Positions 1 to 33,110 of a DNA stretch of 64,000 nucleotides are shown in pieces. Source of the stretch: Hemiscyllium ocellatum (taxonomy: Eukaryota); NCBI RefSeq assembly GCF_020745735.1, contig NW_026867529.1, positions 186,001 to 250,000 on the forward strand, in the 5' to 3' direction. How positions within the stretch are numbered: position 1 is the stretch's first letter; the number at the start of each line of letters is the position of its first letter. The notes under the pieces were generated by a model that was not told the origin of the DNA, ran no database searches, and saw only the letters and a program-made list of their open reading frames with translations. The position numbers and the translations under genes are program-made.

Positions 1-165
1 CCAAGGAGCAGGCAGTATCCAAGGAGCCCTTCCTGAAGAAGGGCTCATGCCCAAAACGTCAATTCTCCTGCTCCTTGGATGCTGCCTGACCTGCTGCGCT
101 TTTCCAGCAACACATTTTCAGCTCTGATCTCCAGCATCTGCAGTCCTCACTTTCTCCTCATTTTT
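1..165. mobile_element. Fold-back remnant of Penelope-like element terminal repeat (cut by window edge)
   Basis: CCTGAAGAAGGGCTCATGCCCAAAACGTC...GGATGCTGCCTGACCTGCTGCGCTTTTCCAGCAACACATTTTCAGCTCTGATCTCCAGCATCTGCAG; the same unit recurs about 10 times in the window and flanks GIY-YIG coding sequence at 25.9-26.8 kb. Confidence 0.8.
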
Positions 166-2847
166 ATCAAGGCAATCACACATTATATTTCTTGATTCCA
201 GGGAAGTATAGTGTTAAATTAATGAAATATGATGATTGGGATGTTTCAATTGGAAATTGTCAGAGATTTAAAGTTTACTTTCATGAGCAATTATTTCCAG
301 CCTCATTGTGTCACAGTACTCACAGGAATGTCTTTCAGAAATGGTGTCTCCCTTTGTTATGGGCAGTCGAATCAGTAAATCTGGGATAATCTTTGCTTGT
401 TAAATAAAGGTGTTAAAGAGTTTTAGCCAAGGGAGACCTGTGGATTGAGCTCACAGATGCACCATGATCTAAGTAAGTGGTGGAACAGCTCGAGGGGCTG
501 AGTGCCCTCCTCTTGTTCCTACCTTCCTATCATTGTGTCATTCATTAAGCTAGCACTGGCCGTGAATACTTTTTATTAAAATATTTCAACAAATTAATTG
601 TTTCACACATGCTTTAAAAAAAACTTGTTGATTATTTTGAACGGGATCATTGACATTCTCAATTTGAATGATCAAAATAACTTCCACCCAATGACAGCAG
701 CCACTGCACTCTGCAGTGTGTTGTTACTTCATAATAGTTTCTTGTGAAACTACAGCTCGAGATCAGGGCACTCAAATTCAATAATATCTCTGAACATTCG
801 CAATTTGTTCAAATGCGTCTTTTCTCTGAAGAACGTGTTTAATCGAACAGAACTTTTTTCAATGAAACAACAAACTTTAAATGCTAGAAAACCAAAATAA
901 AGACAGAAACTTCTGAAGAAACTCAGCAGGTCTAGCAGCTCCTGTGGAGAGAAGGCAAGGTTAACCTTTCGCATCCAAAGACCCCCTCTTCACCAAATTG
1001 TTTTCATGTTTTTGGCACAACAGCTCACACCCGTTGAGATAAACAGTGATTACGTTGGCTTGACTCCTGTTGGAAACAGAATTCTTAGCAGAGGTACTGG
1101 ATGGTCTGAGACAGCAATGGAAGACCAACTGAAAAGCTATCACCATCTGCTGCAAGTGTTGGATTCAGCAGAACCCTCACCGTACTGAACTATCAAATTC
1201 AGCTACAGCACTGGTTTAATATAAAGTAAAACAGCCTCAGCATAATCTCATCAAATATACTTTGAAAATGATTCATTCGGGATTAGTTATAAATGATATT
1301 GTTAGAACAGCAAGTCAAAAGCTGGGATTTCTTTGAGCACTTACTCCATTAACCCCATCTCGCGATGCCCAAAAGCTTGTGAACAAATATTGATCTGGAA
1401 AAAGTGCTAACCACCAAAATTCTGTTTAATATCTAAGAGACACAAGTCAGGACAGCGATTGAATAGATTTCACTAGCCTCTGTGAGTGGAATTCCAACAA
1501 ACACCCAAACATCTCAATCTGCTTTCTTGCATTGAAGTAACCTGATAAGAGATGGTGTTACATACCTCTCTAACAGGTTGTAAGTGAACACAGACCACCT
1601 GGCACAGAATCAGGGACCCTACTATAACTTCACAACAGACCTGAACACAATGAGCTCGACACTATCACGGAGAACATAGCCCACCTGTTTTGACAGTACA
1701 TAAACCATGTTAGTTATTAACACCTTCCAACAATCAGGGATTGTTCCAGAATGTTTGTACAATGAAAGTAACATTTCAACATTTATCCAAGAATACTTTG
1801 ACAGCAGCTCCAAATTGTTCAAACTCTATGGGAACTACAGAGCAATAAAACTCGGAATTGCATTGCCACTGTCACTGGATTCCACCCTCGAACTCTCTTC
1901 CTCTTTCCCCTGTGAATGTTGCTGCACCAGACGGTCTACTGAGTTTGAAAAAGTTTAAAATGTTTTGAAGTGTACTATGACCGTTGCCAGTGACATTTAA
2001 AGCTGATAATAGGTTTTCAAATAATAAGATGCAAAAAAAATTCTGATTCTACATTGTGCCACGAAACATCTCCTGCATAACTGAGGCACAAAGAAAATAT
2101 GCAACATATTTCCCTCTGCCTCGCTCAAATATCTCTTGTTGCCAACAACCAATTTCAAAACTCTTGCTATCTGCCTTTTGTTCCTGAAACGTTCATTCTG
2201 ATTGGAACAACTTAGTCAGGGCTCTCAATTCTGAGGCACCTATTGCATTTCTGGCAGATAAAAGTGGTTTTGAAGCGCGAGATGAAATTGAACTGTCTGA
2301 GATTCAGGTATCCGAACTGGACAATTTACAAATGGTCAGGACCGTTGACAAGTTAGTCAGAGATAGCACTGAAACAAACTGTACAACAGACTTAATCCTA
2401 GAGGATACATTGCTCAACTCCTCACGTCAAATATATTCACTCTAAGTGAATATTCATCAGAAGAACTAACCAGTGGATTAATGTGAACGAGAATGTGTTC
2501 ACAATGAACATAAATAACCACTGAATTACTAAACTTAATAAGTCATTGCATTTAACAAAATTATTGAGGTGGGAAATATCGCCAATTAAAGCACAGATCT
2601 GGAGGAAATGGGTTATTCTCTAAATTATTTTTACATATTTTTAAAATGTTCCTTGAACTGTGGAGATTTTGCATGCACTGCATAAACAATACTGCATTCC
2701 AGTGTGGAAAGCATTTCTGTTGAAGGAATTAGGGCAAGGTTATTTTCTTTTTAACTGCTTTTAATGAACTAAAATGTTTAAAAAGGTGTGAATTGAAAAC
2801 ATGCTTCTGTCTGGAGTTGCCCACTTTAACGGATGTCTAAGTAAATG

Positions 2848-3108
2848 TGGCACTGCTGCCTCACAGATCCAGGTACCCAGGCTCGGTTCCAGCCTCGGGT
2901 GACTGCCTATGTGGAGTTTACACAATCTCACCTGTGTCTGTGTGGATTTCCTCCCACAATCCAAAGATGTGCAAGTCAGGTGAACTGGTCATGCTATATT
3001 GTCCATAGTGTTAGGTGCATTAGTCAGGGGTAAATATAGGGTAGGGGAATGGGTCTGGGTGGGTTACTCTTCAGAGGGTCGGTGCGGTCTTGTTGGGCCA
3101 AATGGCCC
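2848..3108 (+). mobile_element. tRNA-derived SINE (HE1/V-SINE type), diverged
   Basis: CACTGCTGCCTCACAG head, GTGGAGTTT...TTTCCTCCCACAATCCAAAGATGTGC central V-domain, LINE-like tail; homologous to the copy at 9572. Confidence 0.85.
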
Positions 3109-4174
3109 GATGAAGAACGGTGAAGATTAATCCTTAATTATTTATTTTAAGTAAAAATGGCGCCTGAAGGTATCTGTTTTCCCTTCATTTCTAAAACCTT
3201 TGCGATTTGCCTTTCACTTAATAATAGGCTTTATGAAATTTTAACTCGCATGCTGATTGCATTGAATGAGGAAAGAGCAGTTCACTGTCACCAACCGTGT
3301 TAACATTGCAAAAACAATGTAGAAACCAGAAACAGTTTCCCAAATATAACACATTTAATGTTACCCAAGCACAGTCCCTCCTCAACAGATCAACGATCAC
3401 CAGATCACAACACGGTGTGTTTGCAGCAGAACTAGCTCTGCAAACATTTTCAACAGAACCAAGAACATGATGTAACCTCACAAAAAAAACAAACTGAAGT
3501 CTAACAAAGCTGCTCAGAATCAAACAAACTAATGATTAAATTGAATAGAAATAACAAGTCATAACAGCAACCTTGTTGGTGAGGGGACTTAACACTTAAA
3601 ACTGTAACGTTTCTGGCAATAGTTCAAATTATTTCCAACCTGCACACCCTTCCTGATCATGACAATCTTGTGCAGTGCACAGTAGAGTGGGGTTGAAGGC
3701 ATATATTGATTAATCACTTCATGGTCAAAACAAAATTACTGAATGGACAAATATTACCACATTATAATTTTAAGTTAGTTTCAATTATGTAATCTGATCA
3801 ATTCTGCAGTTTCAGATTTTAGTCCCAAATTTTAATTTGAATGAGGCTACTCAAAACAAAATTCAGTTAGTTTACAATTAGAACTGAGTTTTTTTTTAAA
3901 GTCAATGCATTAAAAACTCGTATTTTTTCATTTCTCACACTTCCGGGTTTCTGCCTTAAGTTGTTTTTCAGACCGTTACAAATGGATGTAATATTTTCAA
4001 TCAAGCAGAGAAAAATGTGTCATATAAGTTTAACAAATGCAGAAATGATTCATGAAAAACAAAAGAACTTCACAAATATTGGTAATGAAAAGTACTCCAG
4101 AGAGTCAATCTCCTCACCAGAAAGAAAACACCAATTCAGAAAGCATGAAAACGCAGATCAATTTCACAAACTGA

Positions 4175-4465
4175 ATAAGAATCCAATCAACTCAATTCAA
4201 CAGAATCAAGGAAAATAAAATCAGAATCCAATCAACTCAAAACAACAGATTTGAATGAAACATCATCAGAATCCAACCAATTCAATTCAACAGAATCAAA
4301 TAAAACAATTTCAAAAGCCAATCAACACAATTCAACAAAATCAAGTAAAAACAAAGTCAGAATCCAATCAACACAGTTCAACCCAATCAACTAAAACAAA
4401 GCCAAAATCCAATCAACTCAATTCAACAGAATCAAGTAAAACAAACTCAGAATCTAATCAAGAGA
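4175..4465. repeat. Imperfect ~44-45 bp tandem repeat (~6-7 copies) in the J-C intron
   Basis: Recurrent CAGAATCCAATCAACTCAATTCAACAGAATCAAG motif; accounts for the N/Q/S-rich ORFs at 3961-4476. Confidence 0.85.
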
Positions 4466-4980
4466 ATGCAATATAGCACCGTAAGAAACTTTATGACAGT
4501 TTCTAACCTGCTTGTCATCAACAAAATTAACAAAATAAATGAGATAATATAATCATGGGAAGAACATATATTCAAGAAATGAATAATGATATTTTAGCAT
4601 ATTTTAGTCATGTTTGGTAATATCTTGAACATCTTTGAATTCTTAGGGTTTGTTGTTGATAATAAAACTCACAGTCAGGGTGTCACTGACATTAAACATT
4701 ATTTATAGCTGACTGATTAAGAGACATGAGGTGTTTCAAGTAACCCAGCCACATAGAATGTCCATCTGATCAAAAAAAAAGAGATACACCGAGCAGCTGA
4801 CTCCATCACCACCATTTTAACTATTTGCTGAGCCTTAACTGAAGTCTATAATCAGTCTGAACAAAAATCAATCCGAAACAAACCAAACTCAGCACAGAAT
4901 CTGAGTTTCATTTAATTCAGAAATTAGTCACATGAATAGAAAGTTTTTAAAAAGTCACTAAGAAAGTTCAAAGTTCTTAC

Positions 4981-5038
4981 CTGAAGTCACAGTCACCATG
5001 GTCCCTTGGCCCCAGTACTCAAGATACCCCAGCTATAT
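4981..5038 (-). CDS. IGHJ: IgH joining segment with 5' D-like extension (probable germline-joined D2-JH); frame reads I*LGYLEYWGQGTMVTVTS
   Basis: Minus strand ATATAGCTGGGG TATCTTGAGTAC TGGGGCCAAGGGACCATGGTGACTGTGACTTCAG|GTAAGA; WGQGTMVTVTS motif; phase-1 GT donor at 4980-4979. Confidence 0.95.
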
Positions 5039-5066
5039 CACTGTGAGACACGTTGTGTCAAATACT
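5039..5066 (+). other. Recombination signal sequence with 12-bp spacer, abutting the D/J segment
   Basis: CACTGTG (5039-5045) + AGACACGTTGTG (12 nt) + TCAAATACT (6/9 match to ACAAAAACC); no comparable nonamer at 22/23 nt. Confidence 0.8.
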
Positions 5067-5369
5067 ATGACAGACTGTAAACTGTAAAATGCAGATAATT
5101 TCTTCACTTCCTAGAAAGCAATGATTCAGACTCCTCTAAAAATGATTTGGTGCGTTATTTCAGCTTTTACTATTCATTGTATTTTGAAAGCTTGGAATAC
5201 TTTTCCAGGTTTGGTCTGCATTTAACTTGACAATCAACACGAAGAAGGTAGAAAATAATTATACATTTGTACAAACTAGCCCGACTGGATTGTGTTTAAA
5301 TTGCATCTCACATTATTTCTCGCTCCTGCCACGGTAGAAATCACCAATTTGAGATAAATCCTTGTCAGT

Positions 5370-5407
5370 GGTTATTGTATGAGGATGTCGCTGTGCACAA
5401 CATTGTG
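5370..5407 (-). other. Recombination signal sequence with 22-bp spacer (23-class) after the V exon
   Basis: Minus strand CACAATG (5407-5401) + 22 nt + ACAATAACC (5378-5370, 8/9 match to consensus). Confidence 0.92.
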
Positions 5408-5719
5408 ACCCGCTGTCTCTTGCACAGTAATAGATGGCGGTGTCTTCGATCTTCAGGTTCCCCATGTCCAACGCGAAAATATTGTTTGAAGTGTCTTTGG
5501 ACGCAGTAAATCGATTCTTAATTGCTGGTGCATAGTTATTGCTGGATGAACTATAGTAGTACAGCAGCCACTCCAGACCCTGGCCGGGAACCTGGCGGAC
5601 CCAGTACATGCTGTGGCTGCTGAGATCGAACCCGCTGGTTTTACAGGTCAGTTTCAGGCTGCCTGAGGGACGGCCAGTCTCTGCCTCTGGCTGGGTCAAA
5701 ACAATCTCCGAGTGGACAC
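5408..5719 (-). CDS. IGHV: IgH variable exon, shark IgM-type VH, intact; ends ...YYCARDSG plus 1 nt
   Basis: AG acceptor at 5721-5720; (C)[100 protein letters not shown]; both Cys, WVRQ, GLEW and DTAIYYC present; closely resembles nurse-shark IgM VH as I recall it (isotype is an inference). Confidence 0.97.
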
Positions 5720-5848
5720 CTTTAAAAAAGACAAGAAATAAACCATGAGCATTAATGCAGATGAAATGATGCCTGAGTCTTTTACATTCCTGAGGTAGAC
5801 TAACATTGAAACAGTAACAAAGACAGACTTGAACAAAAAAACACTCAC

Positions 5849-5897
5849 ATGATAAGAAAGTCAGTAATAAACTGAGAAAAATTGTCGACACAATCAT
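5849..5897 (-). CDS. IGHV: IgH V leader exon ([16 protein letters not shown]+T), followed by a 129-nt intron (5720-5848)
   Basis: ATG at 5897, hydrophobic signal peptide, GTGAGT donor at 5848; T|GT rebuilds Cys in frame with VHS-EIVLTQ. Confidence 0.93.
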
Positions 5898-5983: not shown

Positions 5984-5990
5984 ATTTATA
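5984..5990 (-). promoter_or_regulatory. Probable TATA box of the VH promoter
   Basis: Minus strand CCA-TATAAAT-CC about 90 nt upstream of the leader ATG. Confidence 0.6.
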
Positions 5991-8880: not shown

Positions 8881-9393
8881 GGTAACTTTGTTCCCTCACA
8901 TTCTGCTGTTAAAGATCCTCCTGCCACCCCAGGCCCACAGAGAGTGTCCCTTGATACTAGTTCAAAGAAATGAAAGGAACTTGTCCCACCATATTGTTCA
9001 ATTTTATTTGGTTTCAAACACCATAAAAAATAAATGTTCATGTCATTGCTGATTTATGGGAGAATTCCGTTTACACAGTATCTGCTGAAATACCTGCAGT
9101 ACCATCCTGAATCTGGTTCGCAGGTTCACCTGTTGCTCACAAATGCAACCAGACATCAGGGAACAGTGTGTGGGACAGAGGTAAAGTAGTATTACTTCTG
9201 CAATTATAATTACTTATACAAATTAAATGAACTCACACTAGTGTGTAATTGTTTCAGCCAAGAGCTGAGTCAACAAGAATGGAAACTATGTGGAGGAAAT
9301 ACATAATTGTCTTTGTATTAGCTAAAATTGTATGCAAGAATGAAACGTGACTGCAAAACAATGGTAGATATTACAGACGAATAGATAAGGTGC

Positions 9394-10211
9394 TGTGAGG
9401 GGAGGGAGTTAAGCTAGATACGCCTGTACAAACAATAGGTATAAACATCTGTTTCCCACTTTTACTGAAACACAGGAACAAACCCCAATTAAAAGGGTCA
9501 TAAGGATCAGTATGGTAGGGGAAGGCACAGATGGAGGGAGTAGATAATGGTGAAGAAAGGATATGCCTTTTGGGCGGCACGGTGGCACAGTGGTTAGCAC
9601 TGCTGTCTCTCAGCGCCTGAGACCCGGGTTCAATTCCCGACTCAGGCGACTGACTGTGTGGAGTTTGCACGTTCTCCCCGTGTCAGCGTGGGTTTCCTCC
9701 GGGTGCTCCGGTTTCCTCCCACAGTCCAAAGATGTGCAGGTCAGGTGAATTGGCCATGCTAAATTGCCCATAGTGTTAGGTAAGGGGTAAATGTAGGGGT
9801 ATGGGTGGGTTTCGCTTCGGCAGGTCGGTGTGGACTTGTTGGGCCGAAGGGCCTGTTTCCACACTGTAAGTCTAATCTAACAATGACCCACAGCGGGATG
9901 AGGTCAAACGGCCTTGTGAGGCCAGAAATAAGCATTTTGTCACAGATAAGGCTGGATAAGGCAAGAGATAAACAGGAGTAATGGGCGCTGGTCTTAGGGA
10001 AGTGGAAGATGTAAACAGGGGAGGAGCAATGAAATAAAAAAATAGAAACCAAATTACATCAATATCGTGTATGAGTTGAATTCAGTGTGTGGGTCCCTGC
10101 CTTGTCGACATGGACATCACACCATCTTGCAAGAGTCAAATAAAGGGCACCACTGATTCAGATTTTGTCTCGGACTGAAATTATTGAAGTGTGTGAGCTT
10201 TGTTTCTCACA
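9394..10211 (+). mobile_element. Probable solo LTR (~510 bp once the SINE is removed)
   Basis: Begins TGTGAG and ends CTCACA (TG...CA inverted termini); AATAAA at ~10139, about 70 nt before the end; purine-rich U3-like body; no clean TSD (GGTGC vs AGTGA). Confidence 0.45.
9572..9880 (+). mobile_element. Full-length, young-looking HE1/V-type SINE
   Basis: GGGCGGCACGGTGGCACAGTGGTTAGCAC (A box), GGTTCAATTCCC (B box), V-domain, GGGCCGAAGGGCCTGTTTCCACACTGTAAG tail ending in TCTAA repeats. Confidence 0.92.
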
Positions 10212-10738: not shown

Positions 10739-11298
10739 GGCTCTAATTCACATGATTCATACTGGAAATATTCCAAGCCTTCAGTTCAATGATATCAATA
10801 AACTCCACCTGACCGTCCGGCTAGTGATGTGGAAATTAATGGTCTAATTAATGGTGCCAGACGATGCCTGGGACAACATCACTTTATTCAACTAAAGTCA
10901 GCAATTTACATGAACAATGTGAAAGGCACAAACTGTACTTTTACCCAAAGCAGCCAGTTACATCTGCATTCAGATACAAAATTCAGATCATTGCACAGAA
11001 GATAGACGAGCCCTCACAACATTGGAAATGATTTTGTTTGATAAAACAGTCCATCCTAGACTTGCTTAGAACAACTCGTGACAACAAAATTGCTTGATTG
11101 TTTTTGTGTGGGGTAACACATGAAATGTTACTGTATTCCGACTGATGTGAACCATTTGCACTTCAAGTTATGGGAACAAATTTTAGAAATCATTGATCAA
11201 AGGGACATTTTTTTTGGACTCAAGGAAGATCCATAGTGATATTTTGTAAATGTTTGGAGCTGGGATTGCTTTAAGTTTTTAACTAGGACATTGGCATA
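10739..11298 (-). repeat. Right arm of the inverted repeat
   Basis: Collinear reverse complement of 8182-8781 along its whole length. Confidence 0.92.
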
Positions 11299-11799
11299 CA
11301 GTGGACAACATCACAATTTGCTGTAACATGAAACTCGCAACCACTGAGAACCATCGCCTGATGGTTCAGAATTTAACAAGGACCTCGCAAGGTTCATGGA
11401 ATGGACCGACGAGTGATACATGAAAATTAACAAAGGCATTTCTGAAATGATTAATTTAGCTAGGAAGAATGTAGAGACTTCCATCTCTGTTTGCATTTCA
11501 ATATACTATAAATTACTTTTCTATTATATCCTAAAAAACTTGTGTCTTTGTTCATATTTAATACACTCTATCTTGTTCCGGGGTTAAGATAGTTTCTTTA
11601 TTTATTTCACTCAAGACTGGATGCTGTAGTTTTGCCTCAGTATTGACCAACCTCGGTTTGGTGCCAGCTTATATCACTTGAGCTGCTTTTTCAGGAAGTG
11701 AATCTCTCCACCTGTTCAGTCAAAATAATCTGTTCATGCTTCGATCGAAATAGATCCTATTAATATCATCCCAAATTCAGACTCGGTTATTTTGTATTT

Positions 11800-12790
11800 A
11801 TTCATTGGAATTGAACAGGAATATGACCGGCTGTTCTTGGTGGAGTGGGAGGGGGAGTTAAAGTGTTCAGCCATGGGGCTGTGGGGTTGGTTGGTACGGG
11901 TGTCCCAGAGGTGTTCTCTGAAATGATCCGCAAGTTAGTGTCCTGTCTCCCTGATGCAGAGGAGACCACATCAGGTGGAACAGACACAGTGGATGACATT
12001 TGTGGAAGTATAGATAAGTTTCTATGGGATGTGGAAGGATCATTTGGGGCCGTGTCGGAGGTGAGGGGGGAAGGGTGGGCGCAGGTTTTGTACCTCCTGT
12101 GGTGACAGGGGAAGGTGACAGGGGTGGGGAGTGGGCTGGTGGGGGGCATGGACCTGACGAGGGAGTCGTGGAGGGAATGGTGTCTCCGGAATGCCGATAG
12201 GTGTAGGGAGGGAAATATACCCCGAGTGATGGGGCCTGTTTACGGTGGTGGAAGCAGCAGAGGATGATATGATGTATGCAAGGTTGGTGCGGTGGAAGAT
12301 GAGGACCAGGAGGGGTCCCTGTTGCGATTGGAGGGATGGGGTTCAAGGGCATCATCAACAACGTGGGAGGGGAAATTGCAGTCTTTGATAAAGGATCTGG
12401 GATGTTTTATGGTGGAACTGGTCCTCCTGGGAGCAGATGCGGTGGAGTCAGAGGAATTGAGAATAAAGGATGGCATTTGGTTTGGAGGGAGTGGGAGGAT
12501 TGAAAGGAAATGTAGTTGAGGTTGAGCATGTACTGCTTGGGTTGGCGTGACAGGAAGAAACGGAGGGCTTCGAGGCCTCCATCATGGCGTTTGGATGTGT
12601 ACAGGGCCTGGACATTCTGTTCATTCTGGGGCTTATCAATAGCTTGCAGTTATTATGGAACTGCAAGGGCAATGGCTGGGAACTCAGAGAAACCAATGGT
12701 TCAGTCTTCTGCTTGAAGCAAATTTTGACCAGAACATTTAAACACCACAAAGCTCACTGTAGGAAATGCCAGTGCTGCAACTTTTAATAA
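11800..12790 (-). mobile_element. Decayed Penelope-like retroelement (RT and GIY-YIG endonuclease remnants, internally deleted)
   Basis: Frameshifted pieces: LYTSKRHDGGLEALRFFLSRQP (RT), KPNAILYSQFL, DCNFPSHVVDDALEPHPSNRN, TFPCHHRRYKTCAH, FREHLWDTRTNQPH (GIY-YIG region). Confidence 0.85.
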
Positions 12791-13905
12791 TATTTGAAAC
12801 TTGATTAAAAATAGGGATTTTTAGTTATAGTTTCTGAAACAATCAAGAAAAGAATTAACCGTTAGAACAAGCTCTATCAAAGAGAGAGGATTTGCAAAAT
12901 TTGAAACCACACAGTGCTGTGGTTTATTTGAATTCAATGTCGGTCAGAGTTAGATACAGCCAAGGTGATCTCTCCATATATTGATGTTGTTAATCGGACA
13001 CACCAACAGACCTGTCTGTACTAAACTGTATTATTTGTTTAGTTGATCAAAATTTAGGAAATAGATCAAACAGAATGTATTCGGCTGGGAAGGTGATGGA
13101 TACAGAAGATAGAATCAAAAGCTGGGAACATTAAATCTGAAGAGACAGTAACAAGTAGTACACGATCAAACACATGAAAAGGTGCATGTCAATGTGTTCC
13201 AGACATTAGTGAATCGAATGAGCGTGTTAGATAGTCGAGAGACTCGTCCAACGACATCCTGGAATCAGACCGTGAAATAGAGATCGAAAGGTCAATTTGC
13301 AAATGTCACTTCAATGTGATCACTTCACACTCTGTGTCCTGATATAGGCCACATTGGCAGGTGGTTCTGCCAGATTGTATCCCCTGGGTTTATTTTCTGA
13401 TCAGAAGTGAGATGTGTGGCTTGCTGCTGGCACATAGAAACAGGAAGTTGTGCGCCAGCTGAGAATGATACATCAGGCGCTACTTTCCGTATTATCAGCA
13501 CAAACAGTCTTCCTACCTCTGAGGGTGAACACACTGACAGTGTCAAGAACAAACAGACAGTTTGCTGTTGGTCTCAACATTGTATTCAATTCCATTCCCA
13601 TTTTCCAGAATGAAACAGAAGAGACACAAGATTATTTCAGCGAGAGTAAATTATCTGTCAGAGAGATAAGAAAGAGTTATCACCGGGTGAAAGGAGCGAA
13701 ATGACAATATGTAGTTTCGCTCATAAACCTATGTTTAAAAGTACAAAGCTTGAGGGAAGTTAATAAATAAATCTAAGAGGCAGCATTCATTAAAAGTTGG
13801 AATTGTAAGGTTTAAGCAATAAAATTCAGCAGGGCTTTGGTGGAAGTGATATCATCTCGGAAGTGGTTGATTCTGTTTTCCGGAGCTGAAAATGTGTTGT
13901 TGGTT

Positions 13906-14209
13906 AAGATTAGATTAGATTACTTACAGTGTGGAAACAGGCCCTTCGGCCCAACAAGTCCACACCGACCCGCCGAAGCGCAACCCACCCATACCCCTTA
14001 CCTTACACTACGGGCAATTTAGCATGGCCAATTCACCTGACCCGCACATCTTTGGACTGTGGGAGGAAACCGGAGCACCCGGAGGAAACCCACGCAGACA
14101 CGGGGAGAATGTGCAAACTCCACACAGTCAGTCGCCTGAGGCAGGAATTGAACCCAGGTCCCTGGCGCTGTGAGGCAGCAGTGCTAACCACTGTGCCACC
14201 GTGCCGCCC
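13906..14209 (-). mobile_element. Full-length HE1/V-type SINE
   Basis: Reverse complement of the 9572 copy, with (TCTAA)n tail at 13906-13921. Confidence 0.92.
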
Positions 14210-14275
14210 AAACTGTGCCACCGTGCCGCCCCCACTGTGCCACCGTGCCGCCCCCACTGTGCCACCGTGCCGCCC
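14188..14275. repeat. Four tandem copies of the SINE's first ~22 nt
   Basis: (C/A)ACTGTGCCACCGTGCCGCCC x4 = reverse complement of the SINE head. Confidence 0.9.
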
Positions 14276-14499
14276 TTAAAGCGCAGCAGGTCAGGCAGCA
14301 TCCAAGGAACAGGAGAATCGACATTTTGGGCATAAGCCCTTCTGAAGGCTGATTCCTGAAGAAGGGCTTATGCCCGAAACGTTGATTCTCCTGCTCCTTT
14401 GATGCTGCCTGACCTGCTGCGCTTTTCCAGCAACACATTTTTAAGCTCTGATCTCCAGCATCTGCGGTCCTCACTTTCTCCTAGTTGATTTAAACATGG

Positions 14500-19209: not shown

Positions 19210-19990
19210 TAGTCATACAGATATCAGGCACAGAAACAACCCTTCGGTCCAACTGCACTGACCAGATATCCCAACCTGACTGAGTACCATTTGCCAGACA
19301 TTTGGCCTATCTTTCTCTAAATGTTACCTGTTCATACACCCATCCAGGTGCCTTTTAAATGCAGTAATTGAACCCACCTCCACCACTACCACTGGCAGCT
19401 GTTTCCATACATACACGTGAAAAGGTTACCCCTCAGGTTCTTTTCAAACGTTTCTCCTCTCACCTTAATCTGCTGTCCTCTCGTTTTGGACTCTCCCACT
19501 CGAGGAAAAAGGCCTTGGCTATTCACCATATCAATGCCCTGCATGGTTTTATAGGGTCTTGTTCAGGCCACTCCTCAGCCTCCTTTCCTCTCACTGTAGA
19601 GAAAAGAAAAGCCCCAGTCTATTCAGCTTCACCTTATACCTTAAACACTCCAGTTCCAGCATCATTCTTGGAAATCTTTTCTACATCCCCTCAAGTTTCA
19701 TAAAATCCTTCATCGAAATGGTCAGCCAGATTTGTCTGTAATAATTCTAAAAGTGGCCTCACAAATGTCCTGTACAACTGAGACATGGCATCGCGACTCC
19801 TACACTTAATGTTATGACCAATGAAGGAAAGCGTGCCAAACACTTTCTTCCCCACCCTGTCTACCTGCAACTCCACTTTCAAGGAATGATGCATCTGCAC
19901 CCTTTGGTTTCTTTGCTCAGCAACACTCCCCAAGGCCCAGCCATTAATTGTATAAGTCTTGCCCTGGTTTGCCTTACAAAAATGCAGCAC
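19210..19990 (-). mobile_element. CR1/HER1 LINE 3' fragment
   Basis: ORF 19691-19990 reads YTINGWALGSVAEQR...LQVDRVGKKVFGTLSFIG...QLYRTFVRPLLE (CR1 ORF2 C-terminal region); tail at 19210-19270. Confidence 0.85.
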
Positions 19991-19999
19991 CTCACATTT

Positions 20000-21230
20000 A
20001 TTTAATAAAGCTTGGGTTCATGAAAGGCAGGTCATGTTTAACTGATTAACTGGAATTCTTTGAGGTCATAATGAGCGTGGTAGACAATGGGGAACTGGTG
20101 AACGTGGTGTATCTGGATTTCCAAAAGGCATTCAGCAAGGTGCTGCACAAAAGGCTGCTGCATAAGATAAAGATGCACAGTGTTATGAGCAATGCATTAG
20201 CATGGACAGAAAACTGGTTAACTAACAGAATGCAAAACGTGGGGATAAATGGGTGTTTTTCTGGTTGGCAATCAGTGGCGAGTGGTGTGTCTCAGGGATG
20301 AGTGTTGGGACTGCAATTGTTTACAATTCAGGTAGATTGCTTCGAGTTAGAGATCCAAGTGTAGTGTGTTATAGTTCGCAGAAGGCACTTAAAAGAGTGA
20401 TAGAGCAAAGTGTGCAGGAGGATATAGGTAGGTTAAGTAAGTGGGCAAGAGTCTGGCAGATGGAGTACAATGTTAGTAAACGTGAGGTCATCCATTTTGG
20501 TAGGAATAATAACAAACAGAATGCTGCTGTGCAGGGGGACTTGGCTGTTCTTGTGCATGAAACACAAAAGCATGGTTTGCAGGTACAATAGCTAATTAGG
20601 AAGATAAATGGAATAATGTCCTTCATTGGCTGTGGATAGAGTTTAAAATTAGGACTTTCTGTTGCAGCTGTATAGGGCGCTGGTGTGACCATGCCTGAAG
20701 TATTCTGTATACTTTTCATCGCCTTACATGAGATGGCACTGGGGTGGGGTTTGCTGAGGAGGTTGATTACGTTGATTCTGGAAATGAGGGGGGTGGCTTG
20801 TGAGGAGAGATTGAGCAGACTGGGAGTATACTCATTGGAATTCAGAAGAATGTGGGAGGGGGGTTGTAAAATTATAAATGGAATAGATAAGACAGAAGCA
20901 GGGAGGCTATTTCCACTGGTGGGTGAAATTAGAATGACGGGGCATAACATTAAAATAAGGGCAACAGCTTTAGGACTGAGTTGAGGATCAACATCTTCAC
21001 CCAAAGGGTTGTGAAGCTGTGGAATCCCCTGCCTAGTGAAGCAGCTGAGGCCAACCAGTTGAATGTTTTAAAGGTGAAAATAGATTTTTTTAACAGTAAA
21101 GGAATGGAGGGTTATAGTGAGCGGGTGGGTAAGTGGAATCTTAGTCCATTGAAAGATGATCCATGATGTTATTGAAAGGCAGAGCAGACTCATGGGGTCA
21201 GATGGCCTACTCCTGATCGTATTTCTAATG
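20000..21230 (+). mobile_element. CR1 LINE RT to 3' end, pseudogenised
   Basis: VNVVYLDFQKAFSKVLHKRLLHKIKMH...GWQSVASGVSQG; WQMEYNVSKREVIHFG; CEERLSRLGVYSLEFRR. Confidence 0.92.
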
Positions 21231-21399: not shown

Positions 21400-23050
21400 T
21401 TATGGTTCCCTGGCTTTTCCATACAACTTTCTTCAATAATGCTGCCACATTAGTCACTCTCCAGTCTTCTGGCATCTCATCTATGATTATCAACGATACA
21501 AATATCTCAGCAAGGGGTCCACGAATCTCTTCCCTAGTTTCCCACAAAGTTCTGAGAAAACCTAACCAGGTCTCCAGGATTTATTTCCATTTTTCTACTG
21601 TAAGACCTCCAACACCTCCTCTTCTGTAAGATGAACTCATTTTAAGATCACATTATTTATTTCCCAAGTTCCTTAGCTTCTATGCTCCTGTCTACTGTAA
21701 ATATTGATACAAAATATTTGCTTAGTGTCTCAGCCATCTCCTGTGGTTCCATGTATGGAAAGCCATGTTGATCTTTAAGGGCTGTATTCTCTCCTTAGTT
21801 ATTCTTTTAACCTTAAAATAATTTTAGAATCTTTTCGGATTCTCCTTAATTCTATTTGCCAAAGCAATTTCATGCCCCTTTTTTCCCTCATGATTTCCTG
21901 GTTAAGGATACTCCGACTGCCCTTATCCCCTTCTCAGGATTCACTCAATCCCAGCTGTCTATATCTGATGAATGCCCCCTTCGTTTTCTGGACAGGAGTT
22001 GCAATTTCCCTCATCATTGAGCTTTTCCCATGCCTTGCCCTTCACACAAACAGAAACATACCATCACTGAACTCTCATTGTCTCATTCTTAAAGGCCTCC
22101 CACTTGTCAGCCGTCCCTTTACCTGAGAATAATCTCCCTCAACCAACTTCTCAAAGTCTTCTACCATCGAAACTGGCCACATTCCAATTTAAACTTTCAT
22201 TTTTAAATCAATTCTGTCCTTTCTCATCATTATTATTAAACCAATAGAATTATGATCACTTTCCCTGAAGAGTGTCCCTACAGACACCTCAGTCACTTGT
22301 CCTGCCTTGATTCCCAACAGAAGGTCAAGTATTGCAAACTGTCCAGTAGGTGCATCCACATATTGAATAACAACGTTTTCTTGTACACACTTAACCAATT
22401 TCTCCACATTCCAAGATCTTAACATTCCCCCAAATTCTGTTTGGAAAGTTAAAATTCCCTACCATTATCCTCTTTTCTTACAGATAGCATAATCGCTTGT
22501 AAATTTCCCACTGACTATTATTTTACAATCCCAGCAAGGTCATCACCTCTTTCTTATTTTTAAGTTTCATCCATATAACTTCACTGGGCAGTCTCCAAGA
22601 AATATCCTCTCTACATCCAGCTGTAATGTTCTTTCTAACCAAAAACACCACTCCATCTCCTCTCTTGCTCCTCTGTCTATACATTCTATAACATCTGTAT
22701 CCTGGAACATTAAGTTGCCAGTCCTGTTCATCCCTGAGCCACATTTCTGTAATGGGAATGTTATCCTTGTCCCACATTCCCATCTATGCCCTACGTTCAT
22801 CTGTCTCACATGTCAGATCTCTTGCATCGAAGTAAATGCAGTTTACCAGTCCTACCTTGCTCTTGCCAAACTGTTGTCTGCCTTGACCCCTAGAATTGCT
22901 CACCACATCTCACCTCAAACATTTCTCTTTTCTCACTATCTTGTTGGTTCCCACCATCCCCCTTACTAATTTAAAACCTTCAGCATACTGCTAGCAAATT
23001 TCCCCACAAGAATATCGGTCCCCTTCCAATTCAGGTCTCTCTTATATAGG
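21400..23050 (-). mobile_element. CR1 LINE ORF2 fragments (AP endonuclease and linker)
   Basis: ITEMWLRDEQDWQLNVPGYRCYR...GDGVVFLVR; QYVDAPTGQFAILDLLLG...SDHNSI. Confidence 0.88.
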
Positions 23051-24189: not shown

Positions 24190-25390
24190 TAGGACATTAG
24201 CTTTGACAATGTGGAGACTGTATGGGAGGAGCTGTGAAATACCAAGGGACAAAAAACATTAGTGGGTGTCATACACAGACCCCCCAGACTGCAGTGGTCA
24301 TATCGGAATAGTATTCAACAGGAAATTAGCCAAGCATGTGATATGGAGACATCTGTGATCATGGGTGATTTTAATCTGCATCTAGATTGGACAAATCAAA
24401 TTAGCCACAATGTCTTAGAGGAAAAATTCCTGGAGTACATGCGGGATGGTTTTCTTAACCAATATGTGGATGAACCAACTAGAGAGCAGGCCATCTTAGA
24501 CTGGGGACTGTGTAATGAGAAGGGAATCATTGCCAATCTAGCTGCGTGAGACTCCTTGGGGATGAGTGACCATGACATGATACAACTTTTTTATCAGGAT
24601 GGAGAGTGAGCCAGCTGATTTGGAGACTAGGGTGCTGAATTTTAATAAAGGAAACTATGAAGATATATAAGGCATGAGTTGGCGTTGATAGATCAGTGAA
24701 AGTTGCTTAAAGGTGTGACAGTAGATAGGCATTGGCAAATATTCAAGGAAATCATGGGGGATCTGCAACAACTATTTATTCCTGTCTGGTACAAAAGCAA
24801 AATGGGTAACAGGGCCGATCCATGGCTTATAAAGGAAATTAGATAGCATCCAATTGAAGGAAATAGCATAGAAATGGGCCAAGAAAAATAATAGGTCTGA
24901 TGTTTGAGAGCAGTCTTGAATTCAGCAAAGAAGGACCAAGGGATTGATTAAGATGGGGAAAACAGTACAAAAGAAAGTAAGCTTGCAGGGAGCATGAAGA
25001 CTGACGCTACAAGGTTCTACAGTGCATGAAGAGAAAGAGATTGATGAAGACAAATGGTAGGTCCCTCCAGATGGAAATTGGGGAAATGTATAACAAAGGA
25101 CAACGAAACAGCTGAGCAATTGTATCCATCCTTTAGTTCTGTCTTCACAAAAACCGACAGTTATACAGGAGGTGGGTGAGGCTGCAGTTGGAGCATGTGT
25201 TCTGTTTTAGTCACCTTGCTCGAGGAAGGATGTTATTAAACTGGAAAGGTGCAGAAGAAATTTGTAAGGATGTTGCTCGCACTCAGTGTTAAAAGGAGAG
25301 GCTGAACAAGCTAGAACTTCTTTTCTTGGCAGTCTAGGAGACTGAGAGGGGATCTTATAGAACTGTACAAAATTATGAGAGGCATACACT
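24190..25390 (+). mobile_element. CR1 LINE fragments (endonuclease/linker plus a 3' piece)
   Basis: VIMGDFNLHLDWTNQISHNVLEEKFLEYMRDGFLNQYVDEPTREQAILDWGLCNEKGII. Confidence 0.9.
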
Positions 25391-29714: not shown

Positions 29715-30700
29715 TTTTCTTCTACCCCTCCCGATGCCTTTTATCTGTTACTAGCCTTGTACTGGCCTGCACTTCCTCTTGCATACACGCATCGCCTGTT
29801 GCTGAAAAACTTGCCCCTTAGAACCCTTGTAAGTCTTTCCCCTCTCACCCTAAACCTATGCCCTCTAGTTCTGGACTCCCCCACCCCAGGGAAAAGACCT
29901 TGTCTATTTACCCTATCCATGCATCCATGATTTTATAAACCTCTTGAAGGTCACTCCTCAGCCTTCGACACTCCAGGGAAGACAGTTCCGGCCTATCCAG
30001 CCTTTCCTGTAGTTCAAACCCTCCAACCCTGGCAACATCCTTGTAAATCTTTTCTGAACCCTTTCAAATTTCACAATATCCTTTCTATAGGAGTCAGAGC
30101 AGAATTGCACACAATACTCCAAAGGTAGCCTAACCAATGTCCTGTACAGCCACAACATGACCTCCAAACTCCTTTACTCAATGCTCTGACTAATAAGGGA
30201 AAGCATATCAAATGCCTTCGTCACTATCCTATCTACCTGTGACTCCCCTCTCAATCTCTCTGGTCGAAGGAAAACGACCCAATCTTTCCAGTCGCTCTTC
30301 ATAACTGAAACTCTCCAGCTCAGAAAACATCTTTCCAAGTCTTGAGTACTAACATATCCATCCTTAAATGTGGATTCTAGAAATGCAGACAACAAGCTAG
30401 CTGTCCCCTAGCCAATGTTTTCGACAGTTCTAACAAAACTTCCCAGCTCAACCTCTGTGCTTAACAAGGAAAGGCGAGTTTATCACCTGCCCTGGTGTTT
30501 CAGTGACTGGTGACATGCACAACAAGGTCCCTCTGATCTTCAGTGCTTCCCAGGGCCCTATAGTTCATCACGTATTCCCTTACTGTGATTGTCCTCTTAT
30601 GATCTAAGCCCATCTTCCTCACTGTTTGCCACAACACTAGTTTTTGTATCATCCGTGAACTCACTGATCAATCAACTCACTGAATGGCACCGATCAATTA

Positions 30701-31310
30701 GGGCGGCACGGTGGCACAGTGGTTAGCACTGCTGCCTCACAGCGAGAGACCTGGGTTCAATTCCCACCTCAGGCGACTCTCTCTGTAGAGTTTGCACATT
30801 CTCCAGGTGCTCCGGTTTCCACCCACAATCCAAAAATGTGCAGGTTAGGTGAATTGGCGATGCTAAATTGCCCATAGTGTTAGGTGAAGGGGTAAATGTA
30901 GGAGTATGGGTCTGAGTGGTATACGCTCCGGGGAATCGGTGTGGAATTTAGATTCTCGACAATGTGGAAACAGGCTCTTCGGCCCAACAAGTCCACACCA
31001 CCCCTCCAAAGAGAAACCCACCCAAACTCCTACCCTATATTTACCCCTGACTAACACAACGGGCAATTTAGCATGGCCAATTCACCTAACCTGCACATCT
31101 TTGGACTGTGGGAGGAAACCGGAGCACCCGGAGGGGACCCACGTAGACACAGGGAGAATGTGCAAACCCCACACAGACAGGCGGGAATCAAACCCAGGAC
31201 CCTGGTGCTGTGAGGCAGCAGTGCTAACCACTGAGCCACCGTGCTGCCCTACTTGTTGGGCTGAAGGGCCTGTTTCCATACTGTAAGTAATCTAATCTAA
31301 TCTAATCCTC
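30701..31310 (+). mobile_element. HE1/V-type SINE split by a second SINE (pieces 30701-30945 and 31250-31310)
   Basis: ...TCGGTGTGGA | CTTGTTGGGCTGAAGGGCCTGTTTCCATACTGTAAG(TAATC)n rejoin into one SINE. Confidence 0.88.
30946..31249 (-). mobile_element. HE1/V-type SINE inserted antisense into another SINE
   Basis: Head GGGCAGCACGGTGGCTCAGTGGTTAGCAC at 31249 reading leftward; V-domain; tail at ~30946-30975. Confidence 0.9.
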
Positions 31311-32255
31311 CAACTTTCAAGAGAAAGTTATTTCTATCAACCTAGAAACTGCAAGGACCCAATACTGGCCTCTGCAAGATCCCACTGGGCACAAACTTCC
31401 AGTTACAGAAGCACATCTTAACCATCACCCTCTGCTCCCTCCCACTCAGCCCATTGTGGATCCAATTTTCCAAATTTCCTTGCAGCCCATGGGCTCTTGT
31501 CTTTGCCATCAGTGTCCCAGGCAGCACCTTATCAAAAGCCCCACTGAATTCCAAGTAGCCTCCACCAAATGCATTGCTGTCACCTACACATCTGGGCACC
31601 TCTTTGATAAATTCAATCAGGTTGGTCAGATATGACCTTCCTTTAATAAACCCACACCTACTGTTCTTGATTAACCCCTGCCTGCTCCAAGTGCAGATTC
31701 ATTCTGTCCCGAAGTATTCATTCCAACAGTTTCCCCACCGTCAGACTGATTGGCCTGTAGTTTCCTGGTTTCTCCCTCCTTCCTTCTTGAAGACCTTGTC
31801 ACATTTGTTGTTTCTAATTGAGGTCTGCAGCCAAGTGTTAGGTCTCTTGTACAGCTTGGGGAAGGTAGAAAGGGACAGTGGTAGTGTCTTTACCTCTGAG
31901 CTAGGAGATTCAGTTTTGAGTCCCACCTGGTCCAGAGGAGTACCGTACCATCACTGAACAGGTTGGTTGAGAAACTATCTCCAAGGTGTTTTCCCCTCTC
32001 CTGAAATGACTGAGTTAATCCTGAATAGACATTCCAACAACACCTCTGCACCTGAATGGCACTGTCTCTTCTCAATCTAATTTTTCTTCCTTCCATCCAA
32101 ACCTCTTTTGGGAGCTTTACAGCATTCACTTTACCCCGGGGAAGTGAGTTCTGCAGCTTTTACACACTTTTACATTTGTGTCTTTGCCAGTTTTTTGAAA
32201 ATCAAGGTCCAATCAACCTGAAACAGCAGCAGGAATTTATCTTCTTGGATACACA

Positions 32256-32854: not shown

Positions 32855-33110
32855 AACGTGGAAGCAGGCCATTCGGCCTATCAGGTTCACTCTGACCCTC
32901 GGCAGAGCATCCCATCCCCCCACTCTATCCCTGGATCCCTTCATTCCCTCTGGCTAATCCACCGAGCCTGCACATCTTTGGACAGTGGGAGGGAACTGAA
33001 GCACCCGGAGGCTGACACGGGGAGAATGTGCAAACTCCACACAGACAGTCGCCCGAGGCTGGAATCGAACCCGGGTGGGGTGAGGCAACAGAGCTAACCA
33101 CAGAGCCCCT
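32855..33110 (-). mobile_element. Older V-type SINE
   Basis: GCACATCTTTGGAC...GGGGAGAATGTGCAAACTCCACACAGACAGTCGCCCGAGG. Confidence 0.8.

Follow-up and report, generated by a model that had tools for sequence, protein, structure and literature searches.

A putative VD1-D2J germline-joined IgM heavy-chain cluster in the shark Hemiscyllium ocellatum

The window analysed here (one whole stretch of 64 kb of Hemiscyllium ocellatum DNA, a gap-free consensus sequence) carries on its minus strand one IgM-type VH and one JH, with 369 bp between their coding ends. Judged by its sequence, it very probably holds a cluster-type IgM heavy-chain gene of an orectolobiform shark that is partly joined, as VD1-D2J, in the assembled genome. 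V is fused to the 3' end of D1 and D2 is fused to J, and every piece retained has its homologue in related clusters that are unjoined. The joins would have been made in the germ line, by RAG, and the cluster may still be in use. A sequence-only reading of the same DNA had proposed this configuration with VH and JH about 370 bp apart, and all elements lie where it had placed them.

Two deletional joins of the RAG type would account for this structure. One would have taken out the V-D1 interval together with the V 23-RSS and the D1 5' 12-RSS, the other the D2-J interval together with the D2 3' 12-RSS and the J 23-RSS. Still present are VD1 with the D1 3' RSS (22-nt spacer), the D1-D2 interval, which is intact, and D2J, preceded by the D2 5' RSS (12-nt spacer). 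The pair of RSS that survives obeys the 12/23 rule and is oriented for deletion, each signal facing the other, so that one further join would complete the exon, which supports the single light-chain-like step of assembly suggested previously. The product of this last join would be a full VDDJ exon, its CDR3 reading approximately ARDSG-(N)-LGYLEY.

The comparison rests on five IgM-type clusters (L001 to L005) of Chiloscyllium punctatum, the closest public relative, collected as the genomic context of five VH proteins. Coming from another species, these comparators are either orthologues or paralogues, at 90-93% identity. The flanks of the H. ocellatum cluster reach 90-93% nucleotide identity to C. 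punctatum and are collinear with one of its IgM clusters.

Elements of the cluster and of the surrounding window

All coordinates of the cluster refer to the minus strand. A TATA box (TATAAAT, 5984..5990) is located 93 bp 5' of the leader ATG, and L001-L004, four of the five C. punctatum clusters, share the motif at -92/-93. A search of the 600 bp upstream of V found no canonical octamer, either here or in any of the five C. punctatum clusters; its absence is therefore no defect peculiar to the H. ocellatum cluster. The leader exon (5849..5897) encodes 16 residues and the first base of a split codon, extends from the ATG at 5897 to the donor gt at 5848 and shares 96% identity with its counterparts in L001 and L004. 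It is followed by a gt...ag intron (5720..5848, acceptor ag at 5721-5720) that is 94% identical to that of L001. Because this intron is open in frame, a single ORF of 194 aa (5313-5897) starts at the leader ATG and continues through the intron, V and the VD1 joint into the RSS, and prokaryote-style gene callers would call it one protein. No exact copy of this ORF is on record in public assemblies, and a homology search of public data limited to the VD1 junction part gave no match.

The V exon (5719-5408) has no stops and carries the conserved Cys, WVRQ and YYCAR. Compared with the PDB, it matched thousands of antibody VH chains (best E value 1.7e-75), and among shark VH its protein is closest to C. 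punctatum (89% aa identity), with 77% to a horned shark VH. At the nucleotide level it is 92.6% identical to L001. The part derived from VH extends to YYCARD (5415..5719), and its last three nucleotides, GAC (5417-5415), are common to D1 and form a microhomology. Coding sequence continues past CAR for 8 nt beyond the usual end of V (DSG and one base) before CACAATG begins. The last nucleotides of this extension, AGCGGGT (5408..5414), derive from D1, whose first 6-7 nt at the 5' end are lost, and no N nucleotides are needed to explain them.

RSS were searched by scoring matches to the consensus out of 16, with the CAC triplet required. The V-side RSS (5370..5407) consists of the heptamer CACAATG (5407-5401), a 22-nt spacer and the nonamer ACAATAACC (5378-5370) and is thus of the 23 type. 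With 14/16 it is the best on the minus strand, and one other site in the 64 kb scores 14. Its heptamer differs from the CACAGTG of L001 and L004 at position 5, which is A here and G in both relatives. The J-side RSS (5039..5066), which scores 12/16, consists of the nonamer AGTATTTGA (5066-5058), a 12-nt spacer and the heptamer CACAGTG (5045-5039). This D2 5' nonamer is weak (6/9) but is the same in the relatives. The scan thus bears out the 12/23-compatible pair of spacers reported earlier. It also agrees with the claim that no further RSS separates the two signals, as no heptamer-nonamer pair reaching 11/16 was found on either strand of the 303-bp interval between them (5067..5369).

The D2J coding block (5038-4981) is 58 nt long. 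Its first 12-13 nt are D2, ATATAGCTGGGG(T) (5026..5038), and the remainder is J without its first 2-3 nt (4981..5025). The JH sequence is LGYLEYWGQGTMVTVTS; it ends with WGQGTMVTVTS in a split codon, followed by a gtaaga donor (gt at 4980-4979). Read in the frame of J, the block gives I-stop-LGYLEY, the stop being the TAG at 5035-5033 within the D2-derived part. The splice sites, the leader, the V frame, the J donor and both RSS are intact, but the previous description of the cluster as apparently usable understated this in-frame TAG and has to be qualified by it.

The 5' part of the J-Cmu intron (1..4980) is collinear with L001 (11507-17800) at 89-91% identity. Six-frame open frames and RSS scans identified no C exons or further Ig elements in the window, which reaches 4980 bp past J, and no Ig-like open frame was found in the 9 kb after J of L001. 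The intron contains a 45-bp tandem repeat (4174-4461; 6.4 copies, 79% matches, A-rich on the plus strand) located 520-800 bp downstream of J, around which it is collinear with L001.

Several other repeats occupy the window. An interspersed repeat is present on both strands (2764-2988, 9374-9876, 13914-14276, 30726-31283 and 32855-33094), with open frames like ...WPIHLTCTSLDCGRKPEHPEETHADTGR.CKLHT.... The element, probably SINE-like, also has a copy in the J-C intron of L001. Frame fragments of LINE-type retrotransposons with reverse-transcriptase-like motifs such as YLDFQKAF lie at 19694-21163, 22192-22812, 24238-24546 and 29961-31698. An RSS-like site at 20176 on the plus strand (CACAGTG, 23-nt spacer, ACAGAAAAC; 14/16) falls within one of these frames, of reverse-transcriptase type, and was taken as a chance match. 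A satellite of 33-bp units (or 66-bp period), located some 30 kb upstream of the IgM cluster, covers at least 28.6 kb (35391-64000) and continues beyond the right-hand limit of the window. From 38437 on it comprises about 776 copies at 86% matches; its GC content is 0.54, and its GC skew stays constant at about +0.37.

Homology to Chiloscyllium punctatum clusters and the two joints

The five C. punctatum clusters differ in their configuration. L004 is a fully unjoined V-D1-D2-J cluster; it has a V heptamer CGCAGCG and a frameshifted called V product (4001-4500), and 12 bp are deleted in its D1-D2 interval. L001 is unjoined as well, but has lost about 170 bp containing the D2 3' end and the D2 3' 12-RSS (11296-11310), which leaves its J without a legal partner. 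The other three, L002 (4445-4900), L003 (5670-6110) and L005 (4448-4900), are VDD-J clusters in which a fused V-D1-D2 is followed by CACTGCA, a 12-nt spacer and a nonamer, with a 23-RSS J about 350 bp further on. As each of the three has a different junction, a single event that was then simply copied does not account for them. L005 contains an in-frame TAA in its J. A 12-RSS at the J of ordinary clusters, which the sequence-only reading had regarded as speaking against a joined D2J, occurs in none of them: all five carry a 23-spacer RSS at J (scores 13-14/16).

BLASTN aligns the window collinearly with L001 and leaves exactly two gaps. The three matching blocks are window 6293-5415 with L001 9614-10483, 5416-5030 with 10917-11304 (92.8% identity) and 5026-3626 with 11507-12919. 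The stretch from the V-side to the J-side RSS (5039-5407) matches the D1-D2 interval of L001 and L004 only, as had been predicted, and nothing in the V-D1 and D2-J intervals of the unjoined clusters aligns with it. The retained interval itself (5067-5369) is collinear with the D1-D2 intervals of L001 (92.1%) and L004 (89.8%) and has no match in the VDD-J clusters L002, L003 and L005. The RSS that border it are assigned in the same way. The V-side RSS matches the D1 3' RSS of L004 and L001, with a nonamer identical to that of L004, and the J-side RSS is identical to the D2 5' RSS of L001 and L004 at 28 of 28 positions.

Identity among the window, L001 and L004 is uneven along the interval. It is 82-87% in the middle and rises to 95-100% over about 90 bp that include the D2 5' RSS and the sequence upstream of it (5051-5140); positions 5080-5051 are 100% conserved. 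This pattern suggests constraint or gene conversion around D2.

The joints were read from a three-way alignment of the window, L001 and L004. The first gap covers the V-D1 interval with the RSS on either side of it (the V 23-RSS and the D1 5' RSS) and takes in 6-7 nt at the start of D1. In the relatives V ends with ...GCAAGAGAC, and D1 is ATGCGACAGCGGGT in L004 and ATACTACAGTGGGT in L001. The window reads ...GCAAGAGACAGCGGGT, in which V (...GAGAC) is untrimmed and is followed by AGCGGGT, the GAC being shared. The extra nucleotides after V, CAGCGGGT, are the 3' end of the L004 D1. The second gap covers the D2-J interval with its two RSS (the D2 3' RSS and the J 23-RSS), together with 2-3 nt from the end of D2 and 2-3 nt from the start of J. 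D2 of L004 is ATATAACTGGGGTGA and J of L001 and L004 starts with ACTATCTTGA; the window reads ATATAGCTGGGGTATCTTGA, each side having lost 2-3 nt and one T being shared.

Relative to the unjoined clusters, the two intervals and four RSS are thus cleanly missing, in line with the proposal that V-D1 and D2-J were already joined. Both joints can be explained without N nucleotides and with a microhomology of 1-3 nt. All four breakpoints fall 0-7 nt from a heptamer-coding border and both RSS of each pair are gone. Breakpoints so close to the heptamer borders, together with the removal of RSS in pairs, have the look of RAG-mediated deletional coding joints.

Probable germ-line origin and possible use

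The germline status of the cluster is inferred from the gap-free consensus assembly. The same anatomy could in principle arise if a somatic two-step VD-DJ intermediate of lymphocytes had been caught in the assembly, or by misassembly, since VD-DJ is documented as a somatic intermediate in nurse shark lymphoid DNA. This is very unlikely here. Polyclonal lymphocytes could not have set the consensus sequence of a single cluster, and the 64 kb are collinear with C. punctatum on both sides without a gap. Shark lymphocyte joints usually carry N additions, and neither joint needs them. Moreover, three of the five sampled C. punctatum clusters are VDD-J, so that pre-joining is present in an independent assembly of a related species. 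It is more improbable still that the intervals were lost by ordinary deletion (slippage, unequal crossing-over or gene conversion) with ends that reached the RSS borders by chance. Deletions of this kind are known in the family, as illustrated by the approximately 170 bp missing from L001 with its D2 3' RSS and by the 12 bp missing from the D1-D2 interval of L004. However, the deletion in L001 ignores RSS borders, while in H. ocellatum each of the four breakpoints is 0-7 nt away from a heptamer border, RSS were removed in pairs and the ends are joined like V(D)J coding joints.

A different question is whether a cluster joined in the germ line as VD1-D2J is still functional. D2 is locked in the reading frame that contains TAG, and a final join can therefore be productive only if at least 4 nt are trimmed off the D2J end. 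Enumeration of trimming and N addition gave no productive join below 4 nt trimmed from this end, and a productive fraction of about 0.24 to 0.33, near the usual third, once 4 nt or more are removed. There is some chance, well short of even, that the germline structure is as described but represents a dead relic that is rarely or never completed or expressed, and whose C exons or regulatory elements may be defective. The TAG in frame with J, the G-to-A change in the V-side heptamer relative to L001 and L004 and a V exon identity to L001 that about equals intron identity are all consistent with such a relic. Related clusters also carry defects (the degenerate V heptamer and frameshifted V of L004, the lost D2 3' RSS of L001 and the TAA in J of L005), and joined and partly joined heavy-chain genes of the horned shark have not been detected as expressed in expression studies. 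On the other hand, the leader, splice sites, V frame, both RSS and the J donor have all been kept intact, the D2 5' RSS and about 60 nt upstream of it are perfectly conserved, and with sufficient trimming a nearly normal third of joins would be productive. The V exon has a dN/dS of 0.39 relative to L001, with changes concentrated in CDR1 and CDR2, although this ratio is computed from 22 differences only and is weak evidence.

A more far-reaching reading, which we consider rather doubtful, would make the VD1-D2J cluster one product of a RAG activity that is specific to the lineage of bamboo/epaulette-type sharks, still goes on in their germ line and has left IgM clusters in many of the possible partly joined states. 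The cluster might then be used as a one-step, light-chain-like heavy-chain gene with a semi-invariant CDR3 (ARDSG-n-LGYLEY), for instance in young animals, as IgM1gj is in the nurse shark.

The evidence that RAG has acted in the germ cells of vertebrates comes mainly from germline-joined antibody genes, which may also open a way to innate-like, predetermined receptors. The locus provides a clean example of the VD1-D2J state at the sequence level, in which every piece kept or lost can be assigned by homology to unjoined relatives. Taken alone, this cluster leaves existing knowledge unchanged. Together with sibling clusters, it could help to tell how often, and when, germline joining took place in one shark lineage and could show whether one-step heavy-chain genes get used.

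Relation to known germline-joined clusters

Germline-joined IgM clusters have long been known in cartilaginous fish, where VD-J, VDD-J, VD-DJ and VDJ forms occur in the horned shark, skates and ratfish (PMC5192425, PMC4279169, PMC2193156). They have been ascribed to RAG activity in germ cells (a review; Lee et al. 2000, PMC2193156). No description of the IgM cluster configurations of bamboo or epaulette sharks was found in the literature. The VD-DJ germline state is mentioned in a review, and no sequence-level description of such a cluster was found in the searchable literature. Like the H. ocellatum cluster, the known examples belong to the V-D1-D2-J cluster type and have some of their segments joined in genomic DNA. 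They share with it RAG-like junctions, remaining RSS that obey the 12/23 rule and a reduced CDR3 diversity. The H. ocellatum cluster differs from them in that its D2J half is frozen in a stop-codon frame.

The same topology is also found in somatic DNA. B cells and thymocytes of the nurse shark contain VD-DJ ('2R') intermediates (Malecek et al. 2008, PMC2435157) with the identical arrangement of VD1 and the D1 3' RSS, the D-D interval, and the D2 5' RSS and D2J. However, these intermediates come from single-cell lymphoid DNA, whereas the H. ocellatum cluster is an assembly consensus in which no N nucleotides are needed at either joint. With regard to use, the nurse shark also provides a model for what a pre-joined cluster might do: IgM1gj is a fully germline-joined VDJ heavy chain that is expressed in neonates (cited in PMC5192425 and PMC4279169). 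It is likewise pre-joined and its binding site largely predetermined. In contrast to IgM1gj, which is complete and RAG-free, the H. ocellatum cluster needs one RAG step and keeps the diversity of one junction.

The VDD-J clusters of C. punctatum (L002, L003 and L005) belong to the same gene family, with V segments 79-85% identical in nucleotides, and also have one step left. In these clusters it is the D2 3' 12-RSS that faces the J 23-RSS, while in H. ocellatum the D1-D2 interval is open, with the 23-type signal on the V side and the 12-type signal on the J side. The H. ocellatum locus would add a specific cluster to the already known class of VD-DJ germline-joined genes.
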